A stretch of 64,000 nt of DNA from Mytilus edulis (taxonomy: Eukaryota), in assembly GCF_963676685.1 (NCBI RefSeq), contig NC_092347.1:11036001-11100000 (forward strand). The letters are read 5' to 3'. The translations under genes were made by a program, and so were the position numbers. Shown piece by piece: positions 43,360 through 64,000 of this stretch. Below the pieces are notes generated by a model. That model saw nothing but the letters and a program-made list of their open reading frames with translations, was not told the origin of the DNA and searched no databases. Position 1 is the stretch's first letter. Every line of letters starts with the position of its first letter.

Positions 43360-44644
43360 GGATTACAGAAACTTTTATATAAAACATGTATGCAATAACC
43401 TAACGTATATGATAAAATATATATGAGCTAGTGGCTTGGCCAGATAAACACGCCTCCGGGTGTGGATTTTCGTATGTTGAAGACCCATTGGTGGCCTTCG
43501 GCTTTTTTCTGCTGTTTTATCGGTTGTTGTCTCTTTGACACATTCAACATTCCTATTCTCAATTTTATATATAGATAGATAATTTTAAATGAATGATTAT
43601 TTGGAATGTTTAAATCATTGTACAATGTACTTACTAATCATGTAATTGCAATGCTTATCGGATTGCATGTGTATATGAAAAATACTTCCAAGTAAGTTAA
43701 ACGAATAATTAAAACACAAAGGCTCAAATGAAGATGTTTTTTGGGGGGCAATTTCATTTGTATGATACATATTAAAAGTTTATCGTTTAGGACCTTCATA
43801 TTGAACTAACGTAAACCTAAATACATCACAATTCTTCAAGAGAGAGGCGTCAGAAGAATATCCAAACTGATAAGCCGAAAACAAACTGACAATACGATAA
43901 CAAGAAAGGAAAAAAAAAACGATCAAAATAATTAAAAAAAATAATACATGTAGATAAGTATGCAAAACACATCTGAGAAAACTGCTTACTGAACAACACG
44001 AACCCCGTCATAAACTGAACCGATCTCATGTGCCTGATTAACGTGTTATATTTAATATTTTTTTGACGTTTACACATCATTAATGTTTATTTATATGATC
44101 CTTTATTTTGGTTCTTTCCATGAAATTGTTCACTTGGTAGTATCTTCAAATTTTCAAAGAGTTCAGTGTTTGGCCTGTATCATATGATGTTTAATTTGCT
44201 TATTTCCCTAATTGTATTTCAAGAAACATAACTAATCGTAAAATTTACTGATTTGGAATAAATTTCATCCGGTACATGTTCTATTGAGACCATGCATAAG
44301 TTCAAGTAACCCGGAATATAAATGCTTGAGAGATTAAAACCAAAATGTTCCGTCCGAGATTCATACTGAAATCGATATCAAAGTTTTTATGTACGGTACC
44401 TGTTTTTATAGCGGAATAAATCATAATTTTGTAAAGTGTTATTTTTGCATAGTCAATGCTATTTGAAACACAACCTTATTCTGTAAAAAGTGACGGTAAA
44501 ACAATTTCTCCATAACATGAGAGTTGAAATGAAACTCAAAGACACGTTTTCTTCTGAAATCTTGAAAATAATAATTTTGATTTTAAGATACACGCAATAC
44601 GTATGTACAATTTACAATTTGTCTTTTTCACCCTCCGATCAGGA

Positions 44645-47600
44645 TTATTCTGTATTCATACGCACAAAAATATGGGCTGTACCACTAATCAAAACAAGAA
44701 CAAACAAGCCAAAGCCTAATCTGTCAAGTATGACAGACAGGTACATCCATAGGTCAGGGTCATTTGGTTCCATCGTTATGTCGTCTGATGGCGATTTACG
44801 ACCAGTCATTCCATGGAATAGTTTTACCAGCTGTGTATCCTTAAAGAAAAATATGAATAATCATGTTATTGTATTTTTCAATATCGTTACTAAGTGATTT
44901 GTTCAGTGCTTATATTAGCGTTGATCACTGAATATGTTCTGAAGCAAGAAAAGAAAATCACGGTAGAACTCTTTTAAGTTATCTTCCTTGTAATGAATTA
45001 CAAACTATGTCAATCTGCAATGGAGTTTATATCCTATGATATACAAATATTATACATCTTGACTAAATAAAAAATAATTGTAATAAATATTTTACTATAA
45101 CTATCTTGTCTTCATTATGCTAACTTCTTCAGATTCCATATTGCAATTGATTCCACGTAGAAATGATACTCACTGCTTCCACTCACTCTGTCCAACTTTT
45201 GTCGTAATTTTGTGTTTTCAGATTAAATGTTTTAAAACAAATGAAGTGATCTCGAATACCAAGGAACTATACGGGCTTCCGCAAATATCTGATTTTATTC
45301 ATTTCAAAAATCAAAAAAAGGACACTTAAATTGCTTCCACTACTGATAATGTAAAAAAAAAAACACCAAACAAGTGTTCAATTCTATATAATTTAATTTT
45401 GGATGTAACGCGTCTTCTGATTCTGACGTTATTTTGTTATCAGCCCATAGACATAATTTAGTCATGTGATCGTGACGTCATTAACGTTTTTTTATGGTTT
45501 TCTACGGTTTAAAATGGAATTTAGAATTAAATTCGAAATAACATAAAAAAATGTGGTGCACACTGTTAAATAACCCACTACGCGCGTTATTCAGTGTGCA
45601 CCAATTTTTTTTTATGTAATTTCTTCGTAGACAGAAAAAATATTGCAGTCATTCCTTAAATAAATACATACTGAACACTTGTTAGAGATAAAAAAAAAAG
45701 AAAAAAGAAAAAAAGAAAGAAAACAACAAATAACAACTAAAAAACACTTACTGGTTTAGATTTACAGATATGGTTTTTCATTCCTGGTATTGGAACCAGC
45801 GTTAAAACTGACAGAGGCTGTAAGATATAATACTTGATCGTCTTTGGCATTTTGTTGTGTCCTTTATAATAAACATTCAAAACCAAGACCTGCATTAGAG
45901 TTGATCCACCACTTAATACAAGTGTAAATTTCAGGAACGTTGCTGAAACAAAGGGAAAACATTGCTTTGAAAGTTAAAAGTATAAACCATGAACTGTATT
46001 TGGCATTTTTAGATTTTTTTTTATTGGAGCGTCACTGATGAGTCGTTTGCATACGAAACGTGTGTCTATCTTACATAATTTTAAACCTTATATATATATA
46101 TTTAAGAGCCCAGGTGGTCGTGTGGTCTAGCGGGACGGCAGCAGTGCAGGCGATTTGGTGTCACGATATCACAGTAGCATGGGTTCGAATCCCGGCGAGG
46201 GAAGAACCAAAAATTTGCGAAAGCAAATTTACAGATCTAACATTGTTGGGTTGATGTTTAGACGAGGAGTATTATATATTATATATATATAGAGATATGA
46301 TGAGTCTATTTACACACTTTAATCACGAATTAACATAATGGTTAAAATAAATATTCTTTCTTAAAGAATGTTGAAGATTATGTATAAACAAAAAAATATA
46401 TAAAATAGTCTCTTGTCAGTCTTTTAGAATGAATGTTTGTAATGTTATATTTCACTTAGAGACTTTATTTAAATATTTTGTACTTTCTGCTTTTGATTGT
46501 CTTGTCATATACAATAAAATTACACACACAAAGCTCACATATACAGTTGACAATAAAGTCAGCAAGCTTGTCACTTTGTGTGGCCTTGGCAGGCAGGTTT
46601 TCATTTGACAGAGGAAGCCGAGCCTAGGACGTTAAATCAGCACAAAAGAAAAAAAAAAGAACTACATACATATCAAAGGTTCAACGTCAGCAGAAGGTGG
46701 TAATTTCTCAGCAACCAACATCTGAAAAACGGAAATGGTCAACATAACAGTCAGTTGTAATCCTATTTTCTCTCCAGAGTCAACCGGAAGTATAAACCCT
46801 AAAATGGCAATAGACGTAACCAGCATTGACGGGATGATAATGTTTATTACATAACCGGTTGGTTTCCTTTTCATATAAACATAAACAGTCACATCCGGGT
46901 ACGGTTCTGGGCAACATCCATAAATAACTTCATGGCGGACGATTTCACCTTTAGTGATAGTCCACTCTGCGTTTTCTTTAGTTTGGGACAGGTCCACCTT
47001 ACCAACCAGTGATGTGACATCGATTTCGAATCCATTATGAACCCATGAACCAAATGTTAACGTGCATATTTGTGAATCAAAAGGAAATCGAGACACATCC
47101 AACTGACAAAATGTTTCTAGTTTTGTGGGAAACGTATATTTCACAGTACCATCGCTATGAATTATAGCTCTGTAATCAAGCAATCCAAAAAACTCCTCAG
47201 CAACACTGAAAAATACAACATTTTACATTGCAATCTAAGTGTATAAGTAAGAGAACACAAGTAACATTTCTAGATATCCAATTAGTTTAACAAGCTAATT
47301 TCTTTTTTGAGGTTGGAAAATTTTTTCACGTTTGCAATCGGCTTATCTACAGAGTTGGCAGTATCATGAACATAATTTTTATACACTGTTGGCATTAATG
47401 ACGAAATGCGTTTGATATAATTGGAATGCAACTTAAGATACTATTAGTATTCTCATTTTATAAATTTAAGTAATAATTGTAAAAAAAAAAAAGCAAGTTT
47501 AAGTAGAAAAAAGATACGTACCTTTCATACAGGGTGATATCTGGCATCCACACAGATTCTATGGGTAAAATAATTTTATTTGTACCGTTATAGTCTGTTA

Positions 47601-50600
47601 CGTTCCAAACCAAATTACAGTCAAACCAGCCCTGTGTGAATGATGAAGGTTGTGTAGTAAATACATGTATTAATTAAAATGAAGAGGTTTAATTTGCATT
47701 TAAGTCAATAATGGAAATAATATAAATGATTAAAAAAAGGAAACACATCAGACAGGCTTATTTGTTTTATATGGTTGCTCTTTGTTATTTTGCTGTTTCT
47801 TTTTTCACTATCTATCTACTGCTCAGAAAAACAATTATATAGTTACCCATCGCATCCATGCACTGAGTACTAATATTTGTTCTGGTTCGTCCTACAACAA
47901 AGAAAACAATAAAGGTAGAGCTATTATAGTTTTGCCTTTCGTGAAATTACAATGTACACAGGTAAGCGAGACTGGGCAATTTTTTGTTTGCTCCGTGTTG
48001 AAGCACTGTGACTTTGATATGACGAAAAGCAATAAAAGCGCTGTTCCTTTGCTTTTTGTGCTATATCCTTTTTTTTATTATGTAATTGATATTAGAATAC
48101 CACACCTGGCTATTGCAAGTGTATCATTCTCAAGAGTTGAATAATCATGTACTGGTAATTCATTTTGCCTGGTCATCAAATTTAAATTTGGTACTGGCTA
48201 TTTCCGACAATCCAAACAATGTAAATTATGAATAATATTCCTTCTTAACTTTGCTTCTGGTTGTTTTGTTAGCATCATTTCCAGAGGTAAGTTTATTATT
48301 TTTATAAATAAATTATGTATGAAAACATGCAATACTTCTACGACAGAATATAAAAGTTCTAAAAACCTTCTAAGGTAAAGAAGGGGGGGGGGGGCGATTG
48401 AACGCTCATATTATACCCTACCACATTCGTTTTGTGCATGTCCCATTTATCAAGAGTCTGTATCTCAGTGGATATTGTTGGTTCCTGTATTTGTTTTTTT
48501 ATTTGCTTTCAACATACTAGTATTAAGAACGTTTTAAAAATAGCTTATTGTATGGTATTGAACATTAACTTACCAAATTGATCAGCTGACGTATTACCAT
48601 GTCTATGGTAACAGTGACCTTATCTGACCCTTCACAGTATGGAATCACGCTTGATTCATAGTTGTCTCCGATATCAAGTGACAAATTTGTATAACCGGCG
48701 TCCATACCTACATAAAGACATTTAGTAATTTAATTTTTAAATTGTGTTTCCGAATTGCATTTTTGGGGTTAACCTTCATCAAAAACACTCACATATAATA
48801 AATAAATGCAACCTTGGATTCGTAATTATTTGCTACTTGAGGTCCAACTTTGCCTGAATGATAAAATTTTGTGCTTCCTATATTTGTCGATGGCTAAACA
48901 AGAGTAGGATTTGAGAAATTGAAGAAATTGTATGCATAAATAAATAGTTTGCTCTGTTCGCTTTATTTTTTGGGGATAAATGTTCGAGATTGTACAGATT
49001 CATGTTATAATGATATGAGCAAAACAGAAGCATAAAAGCTAAATATTGTGAACGTCACATTGGGTTGTTGCAAAATTTAATTTTGAGGAAAACACTGTTT
49101 TTATAAACCGAAAATTTTCGATCGAAATACACTATTAAAATCGCGCAGGGCCTCTTTTTACACAAAAATCTTACAATAATATCGATCGTAAGTTATACTA
49201 AACATTTTACTACTTTCGAGTATATTTTTCGCGTAATTTTTTTGTGAAATGTGGCCAATACCTCCAGACTGATAGTCTAACAGCATAGATTCTGATTCGA
49301 CAATCATTGATGCATGAACATTAACAGTCCCGTTCCCGAGAAAATTTACCTCACACTAAAATACGATTAATTTACCTCGGAAATTAAACGAAGCTTGATC
49401 TTCTGTTTCATTGTCTTCTAGATTTACACTGTTATTTGAATTCATTCGAGTGGTTGTCATTGGAGCAGTTGACGTCAAATACGTAGACGTTTTGACATCA
49501 GTTGTATACGTAGACGTTTTGGCATCAGTTGAAGTTTCAGTCGTCATGCAAGAATTTGTCGAAGTATTTTCATCGGCTGTTGATAATGCTGCAAGAAAGG
49601 TAAATTATATCCTAATAAAATTTGTCACCCCTTTTGTTGGTCTTTTGACACTCAACTAAAATACAACCAACTACCTCGACACTATCCCAGACAATAAAGA
49701 AAGCATTAGGACTCCCCATGAGAGGCGGCATACAAACTACCCTATCTTGGATCCCAGGTCAGAGTTTTATAGCCGGGAACAAACTAGCGGACCTATTAGC
49801 AAAAGATGCATCACAGAAGGCCCCAAGTCTTCAGGACCAGTACAACGTCATAACAATGTCAGATGTGAAAAGTGCAGTTAAGATGTCAACAAAACTTAAA
49901 TGGCAAATTAGATGGACTAGAAGTGAAACTGGGAGACAACTACATGAATTAGTTCCTATATTGTAGGTAAGACCCATCCACTTAATTATCAAAATCCAGT
50001 TATAAGGAAAACCAGGACAATTTATAACAGGCTACAATAAAATAAATAAATACCGCCATCAGATAGGCCAATCCCTTACGCCATACTTCGAGTGTGGTGA
50101 AGAAGAAAGCACAGAACACTTCCTACTTAATCGTACGAGATAACACCAGGAAAGAGAAGAAATAAAAAGACAGCTGGAGAAACAAAACATCACAATAGAA
50201 CTTCAGATCTCCTTCATGCCACCAACAAAGACAGAGAGATACGAAAGAACAGCGGGTATAATAAGAGTGTTTAAAAGAGTTCAGGGCAATTCTAAGATAC
50301 ATTTAGCCCTAAAGAATTCCAATCCTGCGCCTAAACAAATTAACCTAAGCATAGAGTGTGACATAACTCAGAGAAACTATAGTACCGAGATGAATTAAGC
50401 TAAGTTAAACGCAAAGTCACCAGTTGTGTTAAACTACATGCACATATTGACCTAAGGATTAGAATGAGAATAATAAGGTTAATAGATTTACATATTTTAT
50501 ATTTCATTTTATTTTTATTGTTAGTTCTTTGCCACTAAATTAGAAAAAAAATCAGGAAAGAGCTTTATAATCTCTGACTCTCTCTATTTATATGAAGACT

Positions 50601-53172
50601 ATGCTAGTACGTATGGTGAATTACTTGTACGAGCACTTGTTGTGCTGAAAAATTGTAAATACATGTATAACATTTCCTGTTTTGGGAAATGATGGACATT
50701 GTGACCGTGTATGTTGTACTTTTCCAAGATATTCAAGTATTCTCAATTTCAGTGGAAACGCAGTCAGTCACAAATGTACTTGTGTAGAATGTAGGACAGT
50801 ATGGTTTTGGTTTTGGTTTTCATTTTACTGTAATTCACATAAAGCTGTTCAGAAAACAAATTAAAATGAAGTATCAAATAAGCCGCAAGACATACTAAAA
50901 AAAAATCAATCGTCTTAATATTCGAGAAGGTTAATGGTTGTATTGAGTCATTTTTCATGTTAAGTTTTATTATGAGTTGTCTCTCATATATGGCTCAAAT
51001 ATTCTTATATATATACTAGAACACACCCGTGATATCGCGGGTCTGTGACTGAATTAAAGAATATAACTATGCGTAAGCCTTATTTTAGTATTGGTATTGT
51101 CATTTGATAAAGTCATGCCGATTATAAGTCTAAAGATGCACAGTTTTCTCTGCTTTCACCATCTTTCTTTTTGAACCCGTCGACCTAGAACTTATCAATT
51201 ATTGGTATTATTAATTTTATTTGGAAGACAAAAGGGCCTGGAAAGGAGTATAATTTAATTAACAGCATTGGCCTTTATGAGTTATAAATAAAGTTGAATT
51301 CTTTGATTTGCTGTTTTACGTCATTCCGGCTAACAAATTGAAAACTGTACATGCTGTACCTATACGCCTTATTTTAAGTCCAGATTTTTATTATTCGTAT
51401 TGTCATCTTAGAAAGAGTTTTCTCTGCTTTCACAATCTTTCTTTTTGAACCCGTCGACCTAGAACTTATCAATTATTGGTATTATTAATTTTATTTGGAA
51501 AACAAAAAGGCCTGGAAAGGAGTATTATTTAATTAACAGCATTGCCCTTTATGAGTTATAAATAAAGTTGAGTTCTTTGATTTGCTGTTTTACGTCATTC
51601 CGGCTAACAAATTGAAAACTGTACATGCTGTACCTATACGCCTTATTTCAAGTTAAGTCCAGATTTTTATTATTCGTATTGTCGTCTTAGAAAGTCATAT
51701 TGATTAAAATACTAAAATCGGAAACAATGTAACAATGATCAAATTAAGTAGTGTCAACCCTGTGATGACAAACCGTGAATATAGCAAAATCCAAAGTACA
51801 GCGTTTGGTGGTGCGCCTGTCAGATGCGGAACGTACAGATAAGGTAATAGGTAACAGGTTAATATACTATTGGTATCGGTATCGGATTCGACCCGGAACT
51901 TCTTAATTATTGGCAATATTAATTATGTGGAAAACAAAAGGATCTGGAGTGGTGCAATTTTTAATCAACAGCATTGTACTATATTAGTTATATATAAAGT
52001 TGAATTCTTTGATTCATCGTTTTTACGTGATGACGGCTGACAAATTGGACCTCGTCATTTTAGTATTACTAGAACACACCCGCGAAATCGCGGGCATTCA
52101 GAGCGGAGTTAAAAGTATGTAAAGTGTTGTTAGAAGTTTTATACCTCCTCCTTCATTTCCAAAATTCCCAATTTTTGGTTTTCTATCAATTTCAATATGA
52201 ACATACATTTAGTATGTTATGAACATTTAAGTAAGGAGCCTGTAGTTCAGTGGTTGTCGTTTGTTTGTGTGTTACATATTTGTTTTTCGTTCCTTTTTGT
52301 ACATAAATAAGGCCGCTAGTTTTCTCGTTTGAATTTTTTTACATCGTCATTTCGGGGCCTTTTAAAGCCGAGTATGCGTTATGGGCTTTGCTCGTTGTTG
52401 AAGGCCGTACGGTGACCTATAGTCGTTAATTTCTGTGTCATTTTGGTCTCTTGTGGAGAGTTGTCTCAACATGGCAATCATACCACATCTTTATTTTTGT
52501 AATCAATGAATTTTGTAAAATATTTAATGAATGGAGAGTTTCAGAAGAAGGTATCAAAAGTTCACATGAATAGTTTTAGCGCTTATCTGTATATTACTAT
52601 ATAAATAAAGTGTATTTACTTTCAATTATTAGTTTAGTAATCGATCCATGGTGGTCAATTGACATAGTATACAGACCCTCTCCATTTAATAAACTCTGTA
52701 CAGAATTAAAATACACTTTATTCGTACTATTTGTTTGTTCAAAGTATACAGAAAAACGCAAACCGGAAGTATAATCTGACTTAAAATTTCGTCCAATGAC
52801 GGGACAATATCCGGATGCCTTTTTTCTCGTTTTTCTCCAAAAATAACTCAATCTGAATAATCATATGAATGGATGACAAATGCGACTATGCACTGTACAT
52901 ATAGGACACAGAGTCGTGTTGATTAATTTATTGTGGAAAGAAGAGAAGCGACACCAAAAATGAGGTCTTCTCGTTTAATAGTATAGATAGATATAACGCA
53001 AAAAGTGCTATCCCCTTTGACAACGTTAGAGACTGGATTGGTTTTTTTTCAATTTTCGCCGGCGTATAAAATTATAATAAACTAAAATATGAATTATTAA
53101 ATGTGTATACAAAAAAATCTTACCTTGTAACATCAAAACATAGAAAGCAAGAAAAACTTTTCTCGAAAACAT
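44645..53172 (-). CDS. nAChR alpha-type subunit with Ser/Thr-rich N-terminal extension, cluster gene 4; 8 exons, ~490 aa
   Basis: Exons in transcript order: 53172-53124 (MFSRKVFLAFYVLMLQ), 49588-49376 (S/T-rich, phase 1-1), 48707-48574 (YESSVIPYC), 47891-47847 (DEPEQILVLSAWMRW), 47631-47522 (WFDC..WMPDITLYES), 47205-46670 (CQLDVSRFPFDSQIC, YGCCPEPY, GEKIGLQLT), 45942-45752, 44839-44645 (WMYLSVILDR, TAA). 1473 nt, open throughout. Confidence 0.92.
46027..46072 (+). ncRNA. Type I hammerhead ribozyme motif (retrozyme fragment), intact core with damaged stems
   Basis: GAGCGTCA-CTGATGA-GTC-GTTTGCA-TAC-GAAAC-GTGT-GTC-TATCTT. Flanks resemble the 24051-24528 repeat. Confidence 0.65.
46106..46270 (+). 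mobile_element. tRNA-derived SINE inserted in a (TA)n tract inside the retrozyme fragment
   Basis: A-box-like GGTGGTCGTGTGGTCTAG and B-box GGTTCGAATCCC at ~46182, followed by a non-tRNA body. (TA)n on both sides; retrozyme sequence resumes as ATGATGAGTCTATT near 46297. Confidence 0.75.
49660..50410 (+). mobile_element. 3' fragment of an RNase H-bearing LINE (I/Nimb-like), decayed
   Basis: WIPGQSFIAGNKLADLLAKDA (RNase H C-terminal WxPGH..GNE.AD.LAK motif), WQIRW, and a decayed zinc knuckle (ECGEEESTEHFLL). Contains stops and frameshifts. Confidence 0.8.
51016..52991 (-). mobile_element. Non-autonomous Helitron containing a second nested Helitron (52069-52987)
   Basis: On the minus strand both elements begin TC (TCTA/TAATACTAAAATGACGAG and TCTATACTATTAAACGAG) and end hairpin + GTGTGTTCTAG (CCCGCGATATCACGGG; CCCGCGATTTCGCGGG). 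The inner element sits at an A|T site. Outer element has an internal ~280-bp duplication around 51140-51690. Confidence 0.8.
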
Positions 53173-53428
53173 TGCTTCTTCACAATGAAAAATTATATAA
53201 ACTTGTTTTGTGACCTTTAAGATTTGTAGAGTAATGTTCAACACACACTTTACAGTCAATGTGCCTCAGGTTTAATTGGTTTCTTGGTCAACCTTTGAAC
53301 ATTAGTCAATCAGTTAAAGCTACATATATCATTTCTAAGTCTTGGATTTTAAAAGTACTCGGGACTCACTGGCAAATTTACAACAGGTTCTGAAGTTTGC
53401 AGCGAAATTAAACTGTGACAAACTAACT
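53173..53428. promoter_or_regulatory. Putative bidirectional promoter / 5' UTRs between head-to-head genes 4 and 5
   Basis: Divergent signal-peptide exons start at ATG 53172 (-) and ATG 53429 (+), 256 bp apart, with no recognisable repeat between them. Transcription start sites unknown. Confidence 0.7.
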
Positions 53429-56400
53429 ATGTTTATCAAACAGAATTTGGCAAGCATAGCAATATTGGCGTTTATATTTTTGTTGAAAATCGGTAAGTAA
53501 TAATTATTTGTCATATTTGCAATTTACCTCTTCTGTTATTTTTTAATATTGTATATATAATTTATCTGTCTCATCCGAATGCTCCTACACCGGTTGGAAT
53601 TACGGAAGAAGTCGCCTACTTACTATAAGTGCTGTTCGGTGTGGGCCAAGGCTCCGTGTTGAAAACCGTACATTGACCTATAATGGTTTACTTTTATAAA
53701 TTGTGACTTGGATTGCGAGCTGTCTCATTGGCACTCATACCACATCTTCCTATATTTATGAAAGTCTGTTTTGTTATGCACAGACATTAAGCGTTATAAT
53801 AATTTGTATGCAAATTTTATAGTTTTAATAAACTCATTATAACATTTCTATCAAATTCTCAAAATTTTCAACATATTTATCAAAAATTGCTTTTATATTT
53901 TGTATACTAAAGCAGTTCTGCTTTTGGCTATTTTCAGTTTTTGTTTTGAGCCTGAGACTTCTGTCGCAAAAAGCGAAACTTGAAAGTGATCCGACTGGTT
54001 TAAACACAAGACCTTAACAAAGTTTCCTCTTCCATTATCAAATCTAACAGTAGCTGGTATTTGCAATATCTATTTACAAATTAAAACTATGTTCATCTAA
54101 GATATTTAGAGTTTATGATGTGATAAGCTCCTGACAAGGCCTCTGACAGGATGGTAACATAAAAAAGAAGATGTGGTATGATTGCCAATGATACTGGCCT
54201 TGAACTCTTCTAGTGTAGCTGAAGTTGTGGCTTTTTCCGATAAAGTGCTCCATTCCCTAGTTGATACTGGGGAGAGGTGGTACATGTATCTGTGTTAGTC
54301 TTTGAGAATACGCTGTTGGTGTATGCGATGTCGATACCTTTAATTTGCTGGTGGACTATCATTCTTCTTCTTCTTCTTCTTTAGTTACCGAATACCATCA
54401 ACTTTTTGAGGATTACTTTCTGTAGGCCCGAGGATATCATCAGCCCAGTAGACAGTACTTTGGTACTGCCATGATTTATAACCAACTATCTAAAACTGTC
54501 CGTTTATAGATTTTTAAATTATACAGACACTTCCTCAGGCAAAGTTGGCATCAGATGGATTAAGTTATTTTCTTATGTCCTTTTTTGGTTTATAGCTCTT
54601 CAACATGTTTGGTCCTAATGCATCCTTGGCTTTTAAATATTCGGCTTTGAGTCTTTCTGGTGAAGATAAATTCAGCAAAACGTCTCGAACGCATTGATTA
54701 TAGGTTTTACAGATCTGTTGAAGTGGACTAAGAAAATGTTATCTAATTTTAGATTTAACAGATCAGAAGTTATTGAACAAGGAAAAGAATGATAGAGCAT
54801 CTAAAAGTGACGACTCTTCTACAAACACAGCAAATATCAACGGTACTGTATGATTGACACAAATCACTGTTTAAAGCGTCTATTTCCTCATATATTATTT
54901 ATTCATATAAAAAAGTTTAAGAAAAAGAAGCGTAACAACCTTAAAATATTAATAACGCAATTTTTTATTTGAATAAACAATTACTTTGCTAAATTTTACG
55001 GTAAAATCCTCAATTGACATTGGTCACGTCGACATCAGATGTCTACATACTGAATTGCCTCAATCCACAAATTAATGTTTGATAACATTTGTAATACAGA
55101 AAAATTGAAATAAAACATCACATTTAATAAATAACACATAGCTGAGAGGGTGATATATAGCAGATTGGTACCCCGAGAAAACATTGTCAACCGCGGCAAA
55201 GCCAAGGTTGACAATGCTTTTTCGATCGGTGGCAATCACCCTCTCAGCTATGTGTTATTTAATTTATTATAGTATACTGAATGTCATATAATTATTGTCT
55301 TTTACAGATCAATTTTATTTAAAAGTGTTTTCTATAACGTGAAATATTTACATAACAACGTTACGTCAAATAATAAGATCTGAGCCAAAACGTAGAACTA
55401 GTATTTTTAATTACTTGATGTAAATTCAATTTATCGTCCTTTAAATTACCGATTTTTGATTGGTCTGGACGAGAGGGTAACTAAAAAAATTGTCACCCGC
55501 TCAGCCATGTACATTGTACATTGGAGCAGTAAATTAACATCCTCGTCTTAGCCAATCAAAATATGGCATTTTAATGTGACGTAAAATAAATCCAAATATT
55601 ATCAACAATATACAACAGATTGAGGACGTGGGGATAGTGATCCGGCGGCGGCGGCGGCGGCGTTAGCTGACTTCTTAAAAGGTTTATATTTTAGAAGGTG
55701 AGAGACCTGGATGCTTCATACTTTGTATATAGATGCCTCATGTTACGAAGTTTCCGTCAGTCACATGTCCAATGTCCTTGACCTCATATTCATGGTTCAG
55801 TGACCACTTGAAAAAAAAGTTCAGAATTTTTGTAATGTTGAATTCTCTTATTATAAGTAATAGAATAACTATATTTGGTATGTGCGTACCTTGCAAGGTC
55901 CTCATGCCCGTCAGACAGTTTTCACTTGACCTCGACCTCATTTCATGGATCAGTGAACAAGGTTAAGTTTTGGTGGTCAAGTCCATATCTCAGATACTAT
56001 AAGCATTAGGACTAATATATTTGGTGTATGGAAGGACTGGAAGGTGTACATGTCCAACTGGCAGGTGTCATCTGACCTTGACCTCATTTTCATGGTTCAG
56101 TGGTTATAGTTAAGTTTTTGTGTTTTTGTCTGTTTTTCTCTTACTTTATGCAATAGGTCTACGATATTTGTTGTATGGAATGATTGTAAGGTGTACATGT
56201 CTAGCGGGCAGATGTCATCTGACCTTGACCTCATTTTCATGGTTCAGTGGTCAAAGTTAAGTTTTTAAGTTTTGGTCTTTTTATCTAATATTATATGCCA
56301 AAGGTCAACTATATTTGGTGTATGGAAATATATTATGATCTGGTTTTATTTGACCATGACCTCAATTGCACGGTTCATTGCACAGTGTTAAGTTTTTGTG

Positions 56401-59400
56401 TTTTGGTCTATTTTTCTTAAACTATAAGTAATAGGTCAACTATATTTGTTGTATGGAAGCTTTGTTAGCTGTACATGTCTGCCTGGCATGGTTCATCTGA
56501 CCTTGACCTCATTTTCATGGTTCATTGGTCTTTGTTTAATTAATTAGCTATCTTGGTTAATGTTAAGTTTATGCGACAGTTGTAATAAAGCTTTATACTT
56601 AGGACTATCAACATAATATCAATGATAAGTAAAGAAGGCGAGAATTTCAATTTGTGCACTCTTGTTTTTTTTTGGGAGGGGGTGTACAACAGAAGATAGA
56701 CAAAAGAGACATTAACTTTAAAAAGAAATGAAAATTGAAATATTAAAGATTTATCGATTCTATATAGGCCAATATATTAAGTAAAATGTATCATTATATT
56801 TAATAATTGAATGGCTATTATTTATTTTTGGATTTATTGCTTCGCGGATTATTCAATGTCAAAGTCAAAAAATAATTTTATGGTTTTATTGTCATTCATT
56901 ATAAATAAATTTCGATCAAAAATAAGGCTCAAAGAACTTTTTATATTATTTATTTTAACAATAACAACGTACACACATGTTGGCGTATGAATACACAACG
57001 TCAGAGTGGGCGTGTCGCCATAAAAATTGACAACATTGAAAATAAAAGTAATACTTTTAACCAATCAGAAGACAGTAAATTCACCAAATTTTTTTATTGT
57101 AGAATTAAGTTTTGTCTCTTTTTCTAAAGTAACATTCTTTCACTTGTCAACATTTGATTATAATTTCAGAAATCATAATATATTATTAACATTTTTCCGA
57201 GAAGTGGAAGTGATTATTTATAGTATAACTAATCGCCGTATTTGAATATCAAAAATAAGACAACGCGTGACCGAACGACGCATGGATTAAACGAGTGCGC
57301 AGCACGAGTTTAATCCATAGCGGCGTTCGGTCACAAGTTGAGTTTAATCCATAGCGGCGTTCGGTCACAAGTTGTCTTATTTTTGATATTCAAATACGGC
57401 GATTAGTCATTCTTTTTATTACATTGGCAAATGGCTTTTTTTTTATGAAATTAATGTAGAAAATGTAAGGAACTATATCTTTTTCCTACGCATTGACAAT
57501 TTGTTTTGATCAGACGTTATCGACGTCTTGACATCGCCTATTGTTGTATGACGTCAGAGAGTGAAATAACCACGTTTATTTCACATGTGAAATTATCGGT
57601 TTTTATTTAACTGGGAAATCAATGTAATTCATTGCAACCAATGTAATAAAACTCCTTCCCAGTCAGTTTCATAATTCAACCAATTCAGAATATTCACTGC
57701 AGTCGGGAAAATTAACTACTGTAACAGTACTGTATAGTATTACTGGCTGACTTCTTAATAACATCATGTCAACAAGTTACAAACAAATATATTATACAGA
57801 ACATAAAAAGGCTTTCATACGTTTATATGGACTTAAACATAAAATTCCATTATTCCAGGTGAGGCCTCTTTGTTAGCAAATTTAACGGCAACAATATTAA
57901 CCAATTATGACCAAGCACTCTTACCGAAATGTACCGGACGGGAGCAAGTACAATTAGAAATAAAAATGGCCGTAAGACAACTCATATTACTCGTAAGTAC
58001 ATTATACATCCTCTTAAAGTTCATAGTTGTTTCAGTATCATCGACTTTATATTCATCAAAATTAGTATTAACTGATGCACCGTTGTAATATTTGCAGAAC
58101 AAAGCAATATTAGATCTATATGGTTATTGGATGAATATTTTGGAATATTGTCCCGAGTAGAATTTTATATTGCACGAGCGCTTGCGAGTGCAATATATGT
58201 TCTACGAGGTACAATATTCCCCAATATTCATGCAATAACCCTTCTATTGTATAGCAATATAATATTTGTAAGTAAAAAATGTTTAAACTAAGAATTTGAC
58301 GTCATGAATTTTGAAGATTTATTGCATTAGAGCAATATCGTAATTTATTGCACGCTAACTTTTGGTTACTTTCTGTGGGAACTAGTGTATGCTATGCAGA
58401 AATAACCGTTTTATTTCTGTTACAAGAAAATACATTGTTAAAAATACAAAATGGACGTGTTTTCTTTATACTATTAACATCCAAGTAATAAGGCTGACAC
58501 TATTTTTAAAAATAGATACGTAAAACATTATCATGGTTAGTACTGAGACAAAGGCGGAGATAACCAGATAGAAAAGGACAAACTAGACATTGGGAAACGT
58601 GAAAAAGACCAACAACAACTCCCAAAATATAACCATAAACAGTTAAGATTGAGGAATACGAACTCATGTTATTCGAACACGAATAGAAACTTTTCCATTA
58701 TTGACATCTGTTGTTTTTCAAGTGCATTAAAACATAAAATAAATGTAGCAACAACAAACGGACTAATCAGTGGTAAAACAGGTATGTCTTCATATCTTTT
58801 TCATGACGAACTCTTCGTTTAAAAAGTAAAATCACAAAAATACCGAACTAAGAGGAAAATCAAATCGGAAAGTCCCTAATCACATGGCAAATAGACTACT
58901 TTCGAGTTCATCCGTCACCGGAAAAATCTCGTCAATTATACGCGCCTTTATGACGTCATTTACCAGATAGAGGGGGTCGCCTGTATCCCTGCACTATTTA
59001 CTTTCATCAAGCGTCTTGGTGATCGTCATTGTGCAGGATAAACTAGAAATAATGGTTGTTCTGTAGGTACTTAATGACAATTCCCTAATGACATCAATGC
59101 TGATTGTCAATTTTGAGAATTCAATTTGTCGTATAATTCGTACAATAGAATTATAGTTTTCCAACCACTCGCTCAACATTGGAATGGAAGTGACGACGCC
59201 CCTAAACGCACAAATGACGTTCACTAAAACCAGAGTTTTTGACGGAAATGCATCGAACTCGAAAGTTGTCTATTCAAATGACAAAACACATAAAAAACGA
59301 ATGGACAAGAATTGTCATATTTTTGACAATATTATAGATTCCTTGTGAGCTGATTGTTTTCGTCAAATGTATTGTGTAAGAGACATTGGCTGCATTTTTA

Positions 59401-62400
59401 ATGTTATTTGATCCCTTTTAATTATTTGTAAAAATCTAATACTATTTCAATGATACTTTGCAGGATGAACCCGAACAAATTGCGAAATTCAATATGTGGA
59501 TGCGCTTGGTAAGTCAAATGTTAGGCTTATTTGTACGTTTGTTTGATTGTTTATGTCTGTTGTGTTGTATGTCTGTAATGTATGTTTACACATCTGTGAC
59601 TGTAGTAAACCAATTATTTCCACATTAACATATAATGTCGGTTTAGCTTGCTTAAACAGTTTAGTCAATATAAGGGAACTATAAATAACTGCCATACAAG
59701 GAGAAGGTTAAGCTACGTAAAACTAGGTTACATCCACCTTTTTCTTTAATACAAGGAGAAGGTTAAGCTACGTAAAACCAGGTTACATCCACCTTTTTCT
59801 TTAATACAAGGAGAAGGTTAAGCTACGTAAAACCAGGTTACATCCTCCTTTTTCTTTAATACAAGGAGAAGGTTAAGCTACGTAAAACCAGGTTACATCC
59901 TCCTTTTTCTTTAATACAAGGAGAAGGTTAAGCTACGTAAAACCAGATTACATCCACCTTTTTCTTTAATACAAGGAGAAGGTTAAGCTACGTAAAACCA
60001 GGTTACATCCTCCTTTTTCTTTAATACAAGGAGAAGGTTAATCTACGTAAAACCAGGTTACATCCTCCTTTTTCTTTAATACAAGGAGAAGGTTAAGCTA
60101 CGTAAAACCAGGTTACATCCTCCTTTTTCTTTAATACAAGGAGAAGGTTAAGCTACGTAAAACCAGATTACATCCACCTTTTTCTTTAATACAAGGAGAA
60201 GGTTAATCTACGTAAAACCAGGTTACATCCTCCTTTTTCTTTAATACAAGGAGAAGGTTAAGCTACGTAAAACCAGGTTACATCCTCCTTTTTCTTTAAT
60301 ACAAGGAGAAGGTTAAGCTACGTAAAACCAGGTTACATCCTCCTTTTTCTTTAATACAAGGAGAAGGTTAAGCTACGTAAAACCAGGTTACATCCTCCTT
60401 TTTCTTTAATACAAGGAGAAGGTTAAGCTACGTAAAACCAGGTTACATCCACCTTTTTCTTTAATACAAGGAGAAGGTTAAGCTACGTAAAACCAGGTTA
60501 CATCCTCCTTTTTCTTTAATACAAGGAGAAGGTTAAGCTACGTAAAACCAGGTTACATCCTCCTTTTTCTTTATCAAATACCCGTACAGAAACAGGAATA
60601 TGACAGTTGTTTTTCACTCGTCGTCCTTTTAAGTTGATTAAGTTTGATTGTAGTAGTTTTATAGACTACTTGTTTTCATGCCCCATTTATGGGCATTATG
60701 TTTTTTGGTTAGTGCGTTCGTTCGTCCGTTCGTTTGTCCGTCTGTCCCGCTTCAGGTTAAAGTTTTTGGTCGAGGTAGTTGAAACTTAGTACAAATGTTC
60801 CCTAAGGTATGATTTTTCCAATTTTAATGCCAAGTTAGAGTTTTTATCCCATTTTTACGGTCCACTGAACATAGAAAATGATAGTGCGGATGGGGCATCC
60901 GTGTACTAGGGACACATTCATGTTTTAATTTACCTAGGAGTTCGTTGTCTTTGTTATAATTTTGCATGACTTTAAGCCTCATCTTGTATTTACAAAATAT
61001 AAATGCATGTGATGAACAAAACAAAGACCACTCTGAAATTAAGTTCACATAACATCTCAAAAGATTAACCCTGACAGCTATGCCTCTTTTTTAAAACTTT
61101 AATGTGGGTTATCATGATCTTATATTTCAAATATTTATCAAACATGATAGAGTAACACACACTACAGATTATAAAACTACACTTCTGAAAATACATAATT
61201 ATACTGATTTCAAGGTATTATCTAGGAACAACACAAAAGCATGTACAATGCAGATATTTAGGTTTATAACGATACGGTGACCTTGCCATTTTTCAGATAT
61301 GGACAGATTGTAGATTATACTGGAATCCTGAGGATTTTGGAAACATCACAGAAGTTGTTTTGCCTTTTGATTTGTTATGGACTCCAGATCTAACCTTATA
61401 CGAAAGGTTTGTTTACTAAGTATATACAATTAGATGCGGAGTATATGTTAATGTATCAAGTCCCAGTCACACTGTCACGTTTCAAGAGCTTCATTTTACT
61501 ATGTTTTGAAAGCGTAAAACGGGAATATACGTAACGAAGCGTATCGAAACGTAGTGATCCTTTGTTCAAAACTGGACCTGCCCCGTATGTTTTGAAAATT
61601 CAACAACAACCGTGCAAAAATTCAAACGAAGTAGAAACCTAGTAAATACGTATCAAAGCTTAGCGGAACGCAACAAAACGTGCTTACTACGTATCGAAAC
61701 GTATCAATGCGTGGTGAAATCGTGGGTCTACACGTACATGTACTAATACGTAGCAAAACGTGATAAGAACGTAGCACAAACCTAGTAAAACCTAGTTTTC
61801 AAAATAACGGGACATGTTTGTTCAAAACGTAGTTGAAACGTAGAATTTTAAAATGTAGTAAAACTTGACAGTTGCCACAGTCACACTCACGTTTCAAGAG
61901 TTACGTTTTACTACGTTCTGAAAGCGTATCGAAACGGGAATATACGTAACGAAGCGTATTGAAACGTAGTGATCCTTAAAATGTTTGTTCAAAACGGGAC
62001 TTGCCCTGTATGTTTTGAAAATTTAACAACAAACGTAAAAAATGTGCCAACTACGTATCGAAAGGTATCAATGCGTGGTGGAAACGTGGTTCTACACGTT
62101 CTTATACGTAGCAAAACGTGGTAAGAATGTAGCACAAACCTAGCTTTCAAAATAACGGGACATTTTTATTCAAAACTTGGTTGAAATGTAGCATTTTAAA
62201 CCGTAGTAGAACGTGACAGTGCGACTGGGGCTTTAACAACCTGACTTAAAACAAAACCAGACAACGGGAAGTCAACGTACGGCCTTAACCAAATGACACA
62301 TTTCATTGATTGTCATTTTTCTTGTTTTTACGATCAAAAGACGTAAAAGAACATCCGTCTATTGTTGGTTACTGTCTTTTGCCTCTAGATATATATACAG

Positions 62401-64000
62401 GTATTGGTTTCTTTTGTCGTTAGAATACTGTCTCATTGACGTATACATACCTCATATTTTCTTTTGTGTGTCTTTAAATTACTTTCTACTCTTTTTAAAA
62501 ATGAAGTGTGCTTTTAAAACAATTTACATGCATCAATCTGACTTTAAAAAGACAGTGAAAGCCAATGGTATGTAACATGCAATTGTTTCATCATAAATTT
62601 CAGTTTCCATGAAAACTATTTCGCGGTCAAACCTTACAGTCCACGATCCACATACTTTGTAATATTAGTTTTCTATTTTTATTTGATTTGGTTTGATTTG
62701 TTTTGTTATTGTTTTTGTTTGTTTACTCGTTGTGTTTTTGTTTGTTAAATGTCACTGCTAGAAGACGAAGCATGTTTCTGTGTTAACAGTTTACATTTTA
62801 TTTTACAGTGTAGCTGAAGAGTTTTATGGCTTTAAAGACTACAGACCTAGAGTAATGTTTGACGGAACAGTATATTATAATTTTCCCACTTTAGTAGAAT
62901 CCGTGTGTCAAGTTGATGCTCTGAAGTTTCCATATGACACTCAAATATGTCTATTAACTTTCGGATCCTGGGTGTTTTCAGGATCGGATCTAGATGTATT
63001 TTCGAGTAAAAAGTTTGCCGATGTTTCGTCTATAAAAGACCACGTGGAATGGGTTGTTGAAAGTGTTCCAATCGTAAGACATGTAGTTTTCTACCCGGAG
63101 CCATATCCTGACGTGACTTTTTACGTTCACATCAGACGAAAGCCAGCGTCATACGTCACTAATATCATAATACCATCACTTTTGATCACTCTCATATCGG
63201 CGCTTGGATTTTTACTTCCGGTTGAATCGGGAGAGAAAGTTGGGCTACAACTGACAGTTATGCTGGCAATATTTGTATTCCAAGTACTTGTAGCAGACCA
63301 ATTACCACCTTCTGCAGATTCTACGCCATGGATATGTAAGAATGCGTAAACTTTTTTTATATACATTTAGATGACGAGACTAAAAAAAGTGTGTATAATG
63401 GGCAAAGTTAAGCTTTGTAGAGCCCAGTATAGTATTTCTGTTTTCGCGACTGCTTCAAAATTATCTTTAACATTTATAGGTGTTTAGCAATTTATTAAAA
63501 CAAGGAAGCGATGTGTCAAATATGTGCAATAATTATAATTTATTTATATCAGCAAATTGCTTTTCATTTTTTCACATTTTTTAATGTTTACTAAGATCCT
63601 ACTTTGAAATGATGAAAATATACAAGCTATATTCTAGAACAGATTTTTTTTCTGGAACATGCTAACCTCTTTTTATAGGTTTGTGAATTAAATTACCATA
63701 TTTCGAATAAATCACAACAAACAAACAGGATCAATTATGTTGTGACATGTGTGGTTACGAGTGCGATCTCTTACCGAACTCTGTTGGTTCAAATATTACG
63801 ATTTGTATTTCAGCTGTCTTCCTGAGTTTCACTCTAATATTATGTGGAGTGGCAAGTCTTCTGCAAGTTCTGGTTATAAGCGTACATTTCCAAGATAAGG
63901 ATATGCCCAACTGGACGAAAAGATATATTCTTTACCCTCTTGCTCTTGTGTCAGGTGTCCAAACTCAAGGTTTACAACGTACTTGTTCTCAAGATGGTCA
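53429..64000 (+). CDS. nAChR non-alpha subunit (loop-C Cys-Cys deleted), cluster gene 5; truncated by the window edge
   Basis: Exons 53429-53492 (MFIKQNLASIAILAFIFLLKI), possible 54753-54842, 57859-57992 (YDQALLPKC), 59464-59508, 61297-61406 (WTDC..WTPDLTLYES), 62809-63335 (527 nt; CQVDALKFPYDTQIC; loop C VVFYPEPY; GEKVGLQLT), 63814->64000 (TM3/MX). Confidence 0.92.
54753..54842 (+). CDS. Candidate extra phase 1-1 exon of gene 5 (polar N-terminal extension DLTDQKLLNKEKNDRASKSDDSSTNTANIN)
   Basis: Acceptor AATTTTAG, donor G|GTACTG, 90 nt, open in the phase required between exon 1 and the 57859 exon. Same position as the extension exon of gene 4. Confidence 0.55.
55625..56665 (+). mobile_element. 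Helentron-associated (HINE-like) element with internal ~146-bp tandem array
   Basis: (GGC)n microsatellite after GGGATAGTGATCC, about six units carrying TGACCTTGACCTCATTTTCATGGTTCAG-like sequence, 3' end GTGCACTCTTG followed by a T-run. Confidence 0.7.
57228..57407. repeat. Long foldback palindrome with a 33-bp internal duplication
   Basis: Left arm ACTAATCGCCGTATTTGAATATCAAAAATAAGACAAC, centre ACGAGTGCGCAGCACGAGT, then a reverse-complement arm. Similar foldbacks at 45535-45623, 55126-55264 and 58122-58240. Confidence 0.85.
58890..59274. mobile_element. MITE with 19-bp imperfect TIR, nested in another interspersed repeat
   Basis: AATAGACTACTTTCGAGTT ... AACTCGAAAGTTGTCTATT. It interrupts the AAAAGTAAAATCACAAAAATAC..CACATGGCAA|TCAAATGAC repeat also seen at ~22200 and ~38000. 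Confidence 0.7.
59695..60573. repeat. 55-bp tandem repeat, 16 near-identical copies, in a gene 5 intron
   Basis: Unit TACAAGGAGAAGGTTAAGCTACGTAAAACCAGGTTACATCCTCCTTTTTCTTTAA starts at 59695, 59750 ... 60520. Confidence 0.97.
60673..60925 (+). mobile_element. Short HINE-like element
   Basis: TTTTCATGCCCCA subterminal repeat matches TGGGGCAT near the 3' end; (CGTT/CGTC)n microsatellite; 3' GTGT..ACAC hairpin and T-run. Confidence 0.6.
61459..62233. mobile_element. Tandem dimer of a ~400-bp MITE (Harbinger-like TIR)
   Basis: CCCAGTCACACTGTCACGTT ... AACGTGACAGTGCGACTGGGG. The unit restarts at ~61880 (GTCACACTCACGTTTCAAGAG) and is rich in ACGTA motifs. Confidence 0.65.

Follow-up and report, generated by a model that had tools for sequence, protein, structure and literature searches.

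Nicotinic acetylcholine receptor (nAChR) gene families are massively expanded in bivalves and other lophotrochozoans, largely as tandem arrays in which alpha and non-alpha subunit genes are mixed (Jiao et al., 2019; PMC6896357). Two genes that form part of this published expansion, designated here gene 4 and gene 5, lie in a 64 000-nucleotide window of the genome of the mussel Mytilus edulis (C4:11036001–11100000 of the 1.37-Gb assembly; C4 is contig NC_092347.1). The window holds five intron-containing nAChR subunit genes, with genes 1, 2, 3 and 5 on the + strand and gene 4 alone on the − strand, and the start codons of genes 4 and 5 face away from each other across only 256 bp. Genes 4 and 5 are intact, anciently diverged paralogues encoding alpha7/9/10-like, cation-type nAChR subunits of a Mytilus-restricted clade, gene 4 being of the alpha type and gene 5 non-alpha.

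The locus resembles the arrays of Jiao et al. (2019) in its lineage-specific expansion, its tandem organization, its mixture of alpha and non-alpha members and the alpha-9/alpha-10-like names given by RefSeq. It differs in that the paper stresses intron-poor retrogene arrays, whereas the mussel genes keep a full eight-exon structure; neither the present Mytilus clade nor a start-to-start divergent pair is described in PMC6896357. An earlier note on this DNA, made from the sequence alone, had regarded the pair as lineage-specific and not previously recognized. Genes 4 and 5 do fall in one Mytilus clade apart from genes 1–3 (support 96/96 in a full-length tree). The second part of the claim is not supported, as both genes are already annotated as RefSeq models named alpha-10-like and belong to the expansion cited above.

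Divergent or otherwise linked genes for partner subunits are known elsewhere in the superfamily. Vertebrate γ-aminobutyric acid type A (GABA-A) receptor clusters contain head-to-head alpha and beta genes, which are divergent genes for subunits that are partners in the ligand site, and a role in coordinate expression has been suggested for this conserved orientation (PMC1934366, after Russek). The GABA-A clusters span hundreds of kilobases and are thought to use shared long-range elements, in contrast to the 256 bp between the mussel start codons. In the des-2/deg-3 operon of nematodes (Treinin et al., 1998, cited in PMC2662886) two nAChR genes are also physically coupled, and the nematode pair is co-expressed and functionally dependent; the operon is polycistronic, on one strand and composed of two alpha-type genes, whereas the mussel pair is divergent and would need a common promoter. 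As far as the literature searches reached, no description was found of the Mytilus clade, of the 256-bp start-to-start arrangement or of the clean loop-C deletion described below.

Gene models, receptor hallmarks and loop C

The gene models come from two database proteins, P0291 and P0298 (designations of this form denote database proteins throughout), which map to the window with 100% identity in every exon and with GT–AG introns. Both proteins had been found when the large exon of gene 4 was used as a query and full-length searches and cluster look-ups were then made. The mapping, together with a reading of the spacer, places the two ATGs at 53172 (−) and 53429 (+), 256 bp apart, exactly as the earlier note had proposed, and each ATG begins a hydrophobic signal-peptide exon that ends with a GT donor. 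Each gene has eight coding exons with identical intron phases, including an extra phase 1–1 exon 2. The note's description of a divergent alpha/non-alpha pair of intact nAChR genes is borne out, with exons 7 and 8 of gene 5 running past the window and exon 8 lying 892–1044 bp beyond its end.

Vicinal cysteines in loop C are the defining mark of an nAChR alpha subunit. This definition makes gene 4 an alpha subunit, because its loop C reads YGCCPEPY, and gene 5 is non-alpha because the corresponding segment (FY---PEPY) has no vicinal Cys-Cys; this difference had been read correctly from the start, and the gene 5 loop proves to be shorter by three whole codons.

In both large exons a match to the Pfam family Neur_chan_LBD (PF02931) is followed by one to Neur_chan_memb (PF02932), with E-values of 1e-20 to 1e-27 and ~1e-11, and the precomputed orthologue clusters of both genes carry both domains. 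Searches of both proteins against solved structures gave E-values of 1e-57 to 1e-68. The closest solved structures are human nAChR alpha6 and alpha7 for gene 4 and nAChR alpha7 for gene 5. The transmembrane segments TM1–TM3 and TM4 of gene 4 each aligned significantly with alpha6; for gene 5 TM1–TM3 align with alpha7, and the TM4 stretch, which scores −3.2 bits alone, was read from the family alignment. Both proteins keep the C-x13-C Cys-loop (CQLDVSRFPFDSQIC in gene 4 and CQVDALKFPYDTQIC in gene 5), the loop A tyrosine (W-x-PD-x-T-LY), the loop B tryptophan (GSW), the loop D tryptophan, both loop C tyrosines, the GEK ring (−1' Glu) and the 9' leucine. Both subunits read SGEK with the −1' Glu and lack the Pro-Ala insertion of the anionic type, as predicted for a cation-selective pore. 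The Cys-loop, the aromatic box, the GEK ring and the 9' leucine are common to human alpha7 and alpha6 (7EKI and 8ZRN), the closest sequence matches. Differences from these receptors comprise an identity of only ~35–40% in the alignments, very short M3–M4 loops, an additional low-complexity N-terminal exon, a 2' Gly and a 4' Gln in TM2 and, in gene 5, the missing Cys pair.

A maximum-likelihood (ML) tree built from 31 rows of full-length proteins gathers genes 4 and 5, three genes at C4:99.14–99.17 Mb (the 99-Mb genes, 88 Mb from gene 4) and three non-alpha genes at C4:11.35–11.40 Mb into a single clade (96/96). An ML tree of the large exon (50 rows) likewise unites genes 4 and 5 with the 99-Mb genes (94/85). 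With regard to orthology with alpha9/alpha10, both genes belong to a clade of Mytilus sequences alone that is itself nested among those of bivalves, in trees built without vertebrate sequences, and the clade member P0003 shares ~40% identity with fish alpha-10 proteins. On this sequence evidence, the RefSeq name alpha-10-like reflects best match and not demonstrated orthology with CHRNA9/10. The additional exon of low complexity that separates the signal peptide from the ligand-binding domain appears to be a feature of the clade, since clade members carry a short linker at this position and genes 1–3 do not. The three non-alpha members near the array (C4:11351421–11395365, 250–300 kb downstream and all on the − strand) have the loop C sequences YFNSIPYPYPD or YYKSIPYSYPD; as these lack the Cys pair, the alpha subunits of the array could also find non-alpha partners among these three.

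In several assemblies the orthologues of genes 4 and 5 share one chromosome or contig and have consecutive protein accessions: XP_076101735-38 and XP_076101739 in M. galloprovincialis (VDI42726-30 in an older assembly), XP_063431836/37 and XP_063431839 in M. trossulus, and CAG2214911/12 in an older assembly of M. edulis. In M. coruscus CAC5398426 corresponds to gene 5 and CAC5398428 to a fusion of genes 2 and 3. This accession numbering suggests that genes 4 and 5 lie side by side in M. galloprovincialis and M. trossulus too; they are probably neighbours in M. coruscus as well, and the order of the whole array has probably been kept across Mytilus. The numbering thus answers in part the earlier question of whether the arrangement is conserved elsewhere: it speaks for adjacency within the genus, and for adjacency only.

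The Gly-Cys-Cys of loop C is missing from all four Mytilus orthologues of gene 5, including those of M. galloprovincialis, M. trossulus and M. coruscus, and these orthologues are 89–97% identical across the four species. The nearest relative outside Mytilus, P0005, whose best match in the M. edulis genome is gene 5 (74%), keeps the motif as YGCCPEPF. Since the four Mytilus orthologues are without the Gly-Cys-Cys and P0005 retains it, the loss of the motif is most likely to be placed on the Mytilus stem, where a clean 9-nt deletion would have made gene 5 non-alpha; the gene has remained intact since. A metagenome scan for relatives of P0005 returned only unrelated matches (29% identity).

The spacer and the meaning of the divergent arrangement

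The spacer between the start codons is single-copy in the genome and contains one palindromic TATA element (53193–53201), a CCAAT box on the minus strand and initiator-like sites on both strands. Bidirectional-promoter pairs are recognized by divergent starts separated by less than 1 kb and by correlated expression; in the mussel pair the orientation is divergent, and the distance of 256 bp is that between the ATGs. Because the spacing is so short, both core promoters and both 5' untranslated regions (UTRs) would have to fit into these 256 AT-rich bp, unless distant non-coding first exons exist. Confinement of the promoters to this segment would in turn make a common opening of the chromatin and coupled expression likely, with one open promoter region serving both genes and tending to bring about their joint expression. 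Gene 5, which has no loop-C disulfide, would be expected to require an alpha partner, and gene 4 is the prime candidate, giving alpha(+)/non-alpha(−) heteropentamers. From these features we infer a shared promoter, co-expression and co-assembly of genes 4 and 5. The interpretation favoured here, that of a conserved divergent pair with a common promoter region in which the gene 5 product co-assembles mainly with that of gene 4, is tentative and is held at somewhat less than even confidence. A stronger version, in which the pair constitutes a dedicated, promoter-coupled obligate heteromer with a 256-bp bidirectional promoter, formed by an alpha subunit and a partner turned non-alpha on the Mytilus stem by a single three-codon deletion, would seem unlikely.

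If the two subunits are co-expressed and co-assembled, the locus would offer a compact and testable case of gene order keeping the partner subunits of a heteromeric channel together, would show a minimal deletion in loop C turning an alpha into a non-alpha subunit and would give a first handle on pairing rules in the large, functionally uncharacterized nAChR repertoire of bivalves. Should the obligate heteromer be real, it would represent a naturally dated case in which a non-alpha (complementary) subunit was born from an alpha subunit, after which genome architecture locked the newcomer to its partner. Without co-expression of the two genes, gene 4 is merely one inverted member of a tandem array.

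Several observations weigh against the interpretation favoured here. With 33% GC and two CpG dinucleotides, the spacer is not a bidirectional promoter of the CpG-island type. Four further non-alpha genes belong to the same clade, three of them ~250–300 kb away, so that gene 4 has alternative partners. An alpha gene beside a non-alpha gene is expected by chance because most bivalve nAChR genes are non-alpha; in Crassostrea gigas 33 of 132 nAChR genes are alpha (PMC6896357). The published expression of bivalve nAChR paralogues is highly diverse by stage and organ. The full-length identity of gene 4 to gene 5 (46%) is no higher than that to genes 1–3 (46–48%), and the full-length tree groups gene 4 with the 99-Mb genes (95/90) and not with gene 5.

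Some of these points also lend weight to the view that the layout is incidental and goes back to an old inversion of one array member, gene 4. On this view each gene would be under separate control, exerted by elements specific to tissue or stage in its long first intron and flanks, and each subunit would assemble with other partners, or gene 4 would form homomers, as alpha7/alpha9-like subunits can. In addition to the diverse paralogue expression, the lack of any special closeness in sequence and the availability of further alpha and non-alpha members of the clade as partners, it is consistent with this view that gene 4 is the sole inverted gene of the five and that it keeps the aromatic residues of both the principal and the complementary faces. 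However, a start-to-start spacing of 256 bp is very tight for a 1.37-Gb genome and leaves little room for two independent promoters, and the accession numbering suggests that their adjacency has been preserved throughout the genus. An incidental layout is a real possibility and ranks next after the shared-promoter pair.

The short spacer could also reflect overlapping or interfering transcription, in which the non-coding first exon of one gene, or of both, lies beyond the first exon of the partner gene, the 5' ends overlap in antisense and expression is antagonistic. Weak acceptor-like AG sites occur shortly upstream of both ATGs, and the range of starts open to simple leaders is limited by upstream ATGs on each strand of the spacer, both of which would suit such an arrangement; the ATG-proximal AG sites, however, lack good polypyrimidine tracts, and this scheme is regarded as distinctly improbable.

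Ancestry of the pair

The earlier note had attributed the pair to an inverted duplication, partly on the strength of four motifs shared by genes 4 and 5 and absent from genes 1–3. Within the window all four behave as described: DEPEQ in genes 4 and 5 is replaced by DEPNQ in genes 1–3, LYE|S and SVAEEF[FY]G are restricted to genes 4 and 5, and GEK[IV]GLQLT contrasts with GEK[VA]SLVIT in genes 1–3. However, two of the motifs are found outside the pair. DEPEQ and LYES both occur in one of the 99-Mb genes (99.155 Mb), while LNEPEQ is combined with LYES in the gene at 99.165 Mb and with LYNS in that at 99.143 Mb. When the large exon of gene 4 was compared with the whole genome, the best paralogues were the three 99-Mb genes (60–62% identity), followed by gene 5 (61% identity at a lower score) and genes 1–3 (55–58%).

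A recent inverted duplication that made a matched pair would account for the features specific to genes 4 and 5 (SVAEEF, the 4' Gln in TM2 and LWMYLS before TM4) and for five alignment columns shared exclusively by the two, compared with two and one for the alternative pairings. A sister relation is also compatible with the data, in that a tree constrained to contain it is 5.4 log-likelihood units worse and is not rejected by the approximately unbiased (AU) test (p = 0.108). Nevertheless, the two proteins are only 46% identical, and in the full-length tree their stem branches amount to 0.85 and 0.73 changes per site compared with 0.01–0.1 inside Mytilus. Another taxon has a separate gene-4-like protein (P0001, 70% identity) and the gene-5-like P0005. 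The sole inverted similarity between the genes, 133 nt at 74% complementarity, lies inside the large coding exon, and no inverted symmetry was found in their non-coding DNA. The low identity, the long stems, the separate proteins in the other taxon and the restriction of the inverted match to coding sequence exclude a recent event, for which we see very little chance, and a simple one is not supported; any inverted duplication must be ancient because no non-coding symmetry survives. The pair can thus be placed in one subfamily, and the duplication proposed earlier may have taken place in an ancient form.

Decay or loss of function of gene 5, as the loss of its loop-C disulfide and an adjoining partial duplicate of its 3' half might suggest, is scarcely credible, because all eight exons are open with intact splice sites, all other hallmarks are kept, the orthologues of four species are 89–97% identical and a public 1575-nt contig encodes a full-length 435-residue orthologue; a pseudogene is ruled out by the intact exons and the cross-species conservation. 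As gene 5 spans more than 11 kb, this contig must be spliced RNA, and the gene 5 lineage is therefore transcribed.

Feature coordinates and minor observations

Table 1. Features of genes 4 and 5 and of the spacer, in window coordinates.
Feature	Position	Strand	Basis
Gene 4, alpha-type nAChR subunit, 490 aa	44645..53172	−	P0291 (M. edulis XP_071166732.1), 100% identity
Gene 4 exons	53172-53124, 49588-49376, 48707-48574, 47891-47847, 47631-47522, 47205-46670, 45942-45752, 44839-44648; stop 44647-44645	−	P0291 mapping
Gene 4 exon 2, Ser/Thr-rich low-complexity cassette, phase 1-1, 27-bp repeat at 49479-49531	49376..49588	−	P0291 mapping
Gene 4 DEPEQ	47877-47891	−	motif reading
Gene 4 loop C, YGCCPEPY, vicinal Cys-Cys	46899..46922	−	motif reading
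Gene 4 TM2 start, GEKIGLQLT (−1' Glu, 2' Gly, 4' Gln)	46749..46775	−	motif and alignment to alpha6
Spacer between start codons, 256 bp, candidate shared promoter and 5' UTR region	53173..53428	.	sequence reading
Gene 5, non-alpha nAChR subunit, 439 aa	53429..64000, continues past window	+	P0298, 100% identity
Gene 5 exons	53429-53492, 54753-54842, 57859-57992, 59464-59508, 61297-61406, 62809-63335, 63814-64007 (cut at 64000), exon 8 64892-65044 in extended coordinates	+	P0298 mapping
Gene 5 exon 2, short Ser/Asp/Lys-rich cassette, phase 1-1, at the position of gene 4 exon 2, absent from genes 1-3	54753..54842	+	P0298 mapping
Gene 5 DEPEQ	59464-59478	+	motif reading
Gene 5 loop C, FYPEPY, without Gly-Cys-Cys, both Tyr kept	63089..63106	+	exactly 9 nt shorter than gene 4
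Gene 5 TM2 start, GEKVGLQLT	63230..63256	+	motif and alignment to alpha7

The repeat in exon 2 of gene 4 encodes the nine-residue unit VKTSTYTTD (27 bp), the copy number of which varies, with the Mytilus proteins ranging from 490 to 535 residues. The exon is missing from isoform X2 of M. trossulus, and its 1–1 phase means that it can be skipped with the frame kept. Intron 1 of the same gene contains a retroelement-like open reading frame (ORF) fragment (49718–49966, +) and a tandem repeat of two 274-bp units (51142–51694). In the older M. edulis assembly the protein CAG2214911.1 (P0287, 1323 aa) joins a retroelement-like ORF of ~850 residues to exons 2–8 of gene 4; this ORF had no match in the window at an identity of at least 80%. 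The fusion suggests that intron 1 either is polymorphic for a transposon insertion or has been mis-annotated. An Rfam scan of positions 44000–64000 gave no match.

A 5.1-kb unit containing exons 6–8 of gene 5 (from 61459 to the window end at 64000 and on to C4:11108143) is tandemly repeated just beyond the end of the window. The copies are 22 substitutions and some indels apart, the sole exonic difference being an in-frame 3-nt insertion (SWVLFSG versus SWVFSG), and the second copy carries a modelled 277-residue database protein, P0299. Either part of the gene was duplicated very recently or the repeat is an artefact of assembly. Within gene 5 itself, intron 4 holds a 55-bp minisatellite of 16 copies at 98% identity (59694–60573). 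Intron 2 contains a satellite-like array of four 147-bp units (55927–56530) and an inverted repeat with 60-nt arms that are 92% complementary and a 72-nt loop (57222–57413), which looks like a miniature transposon.

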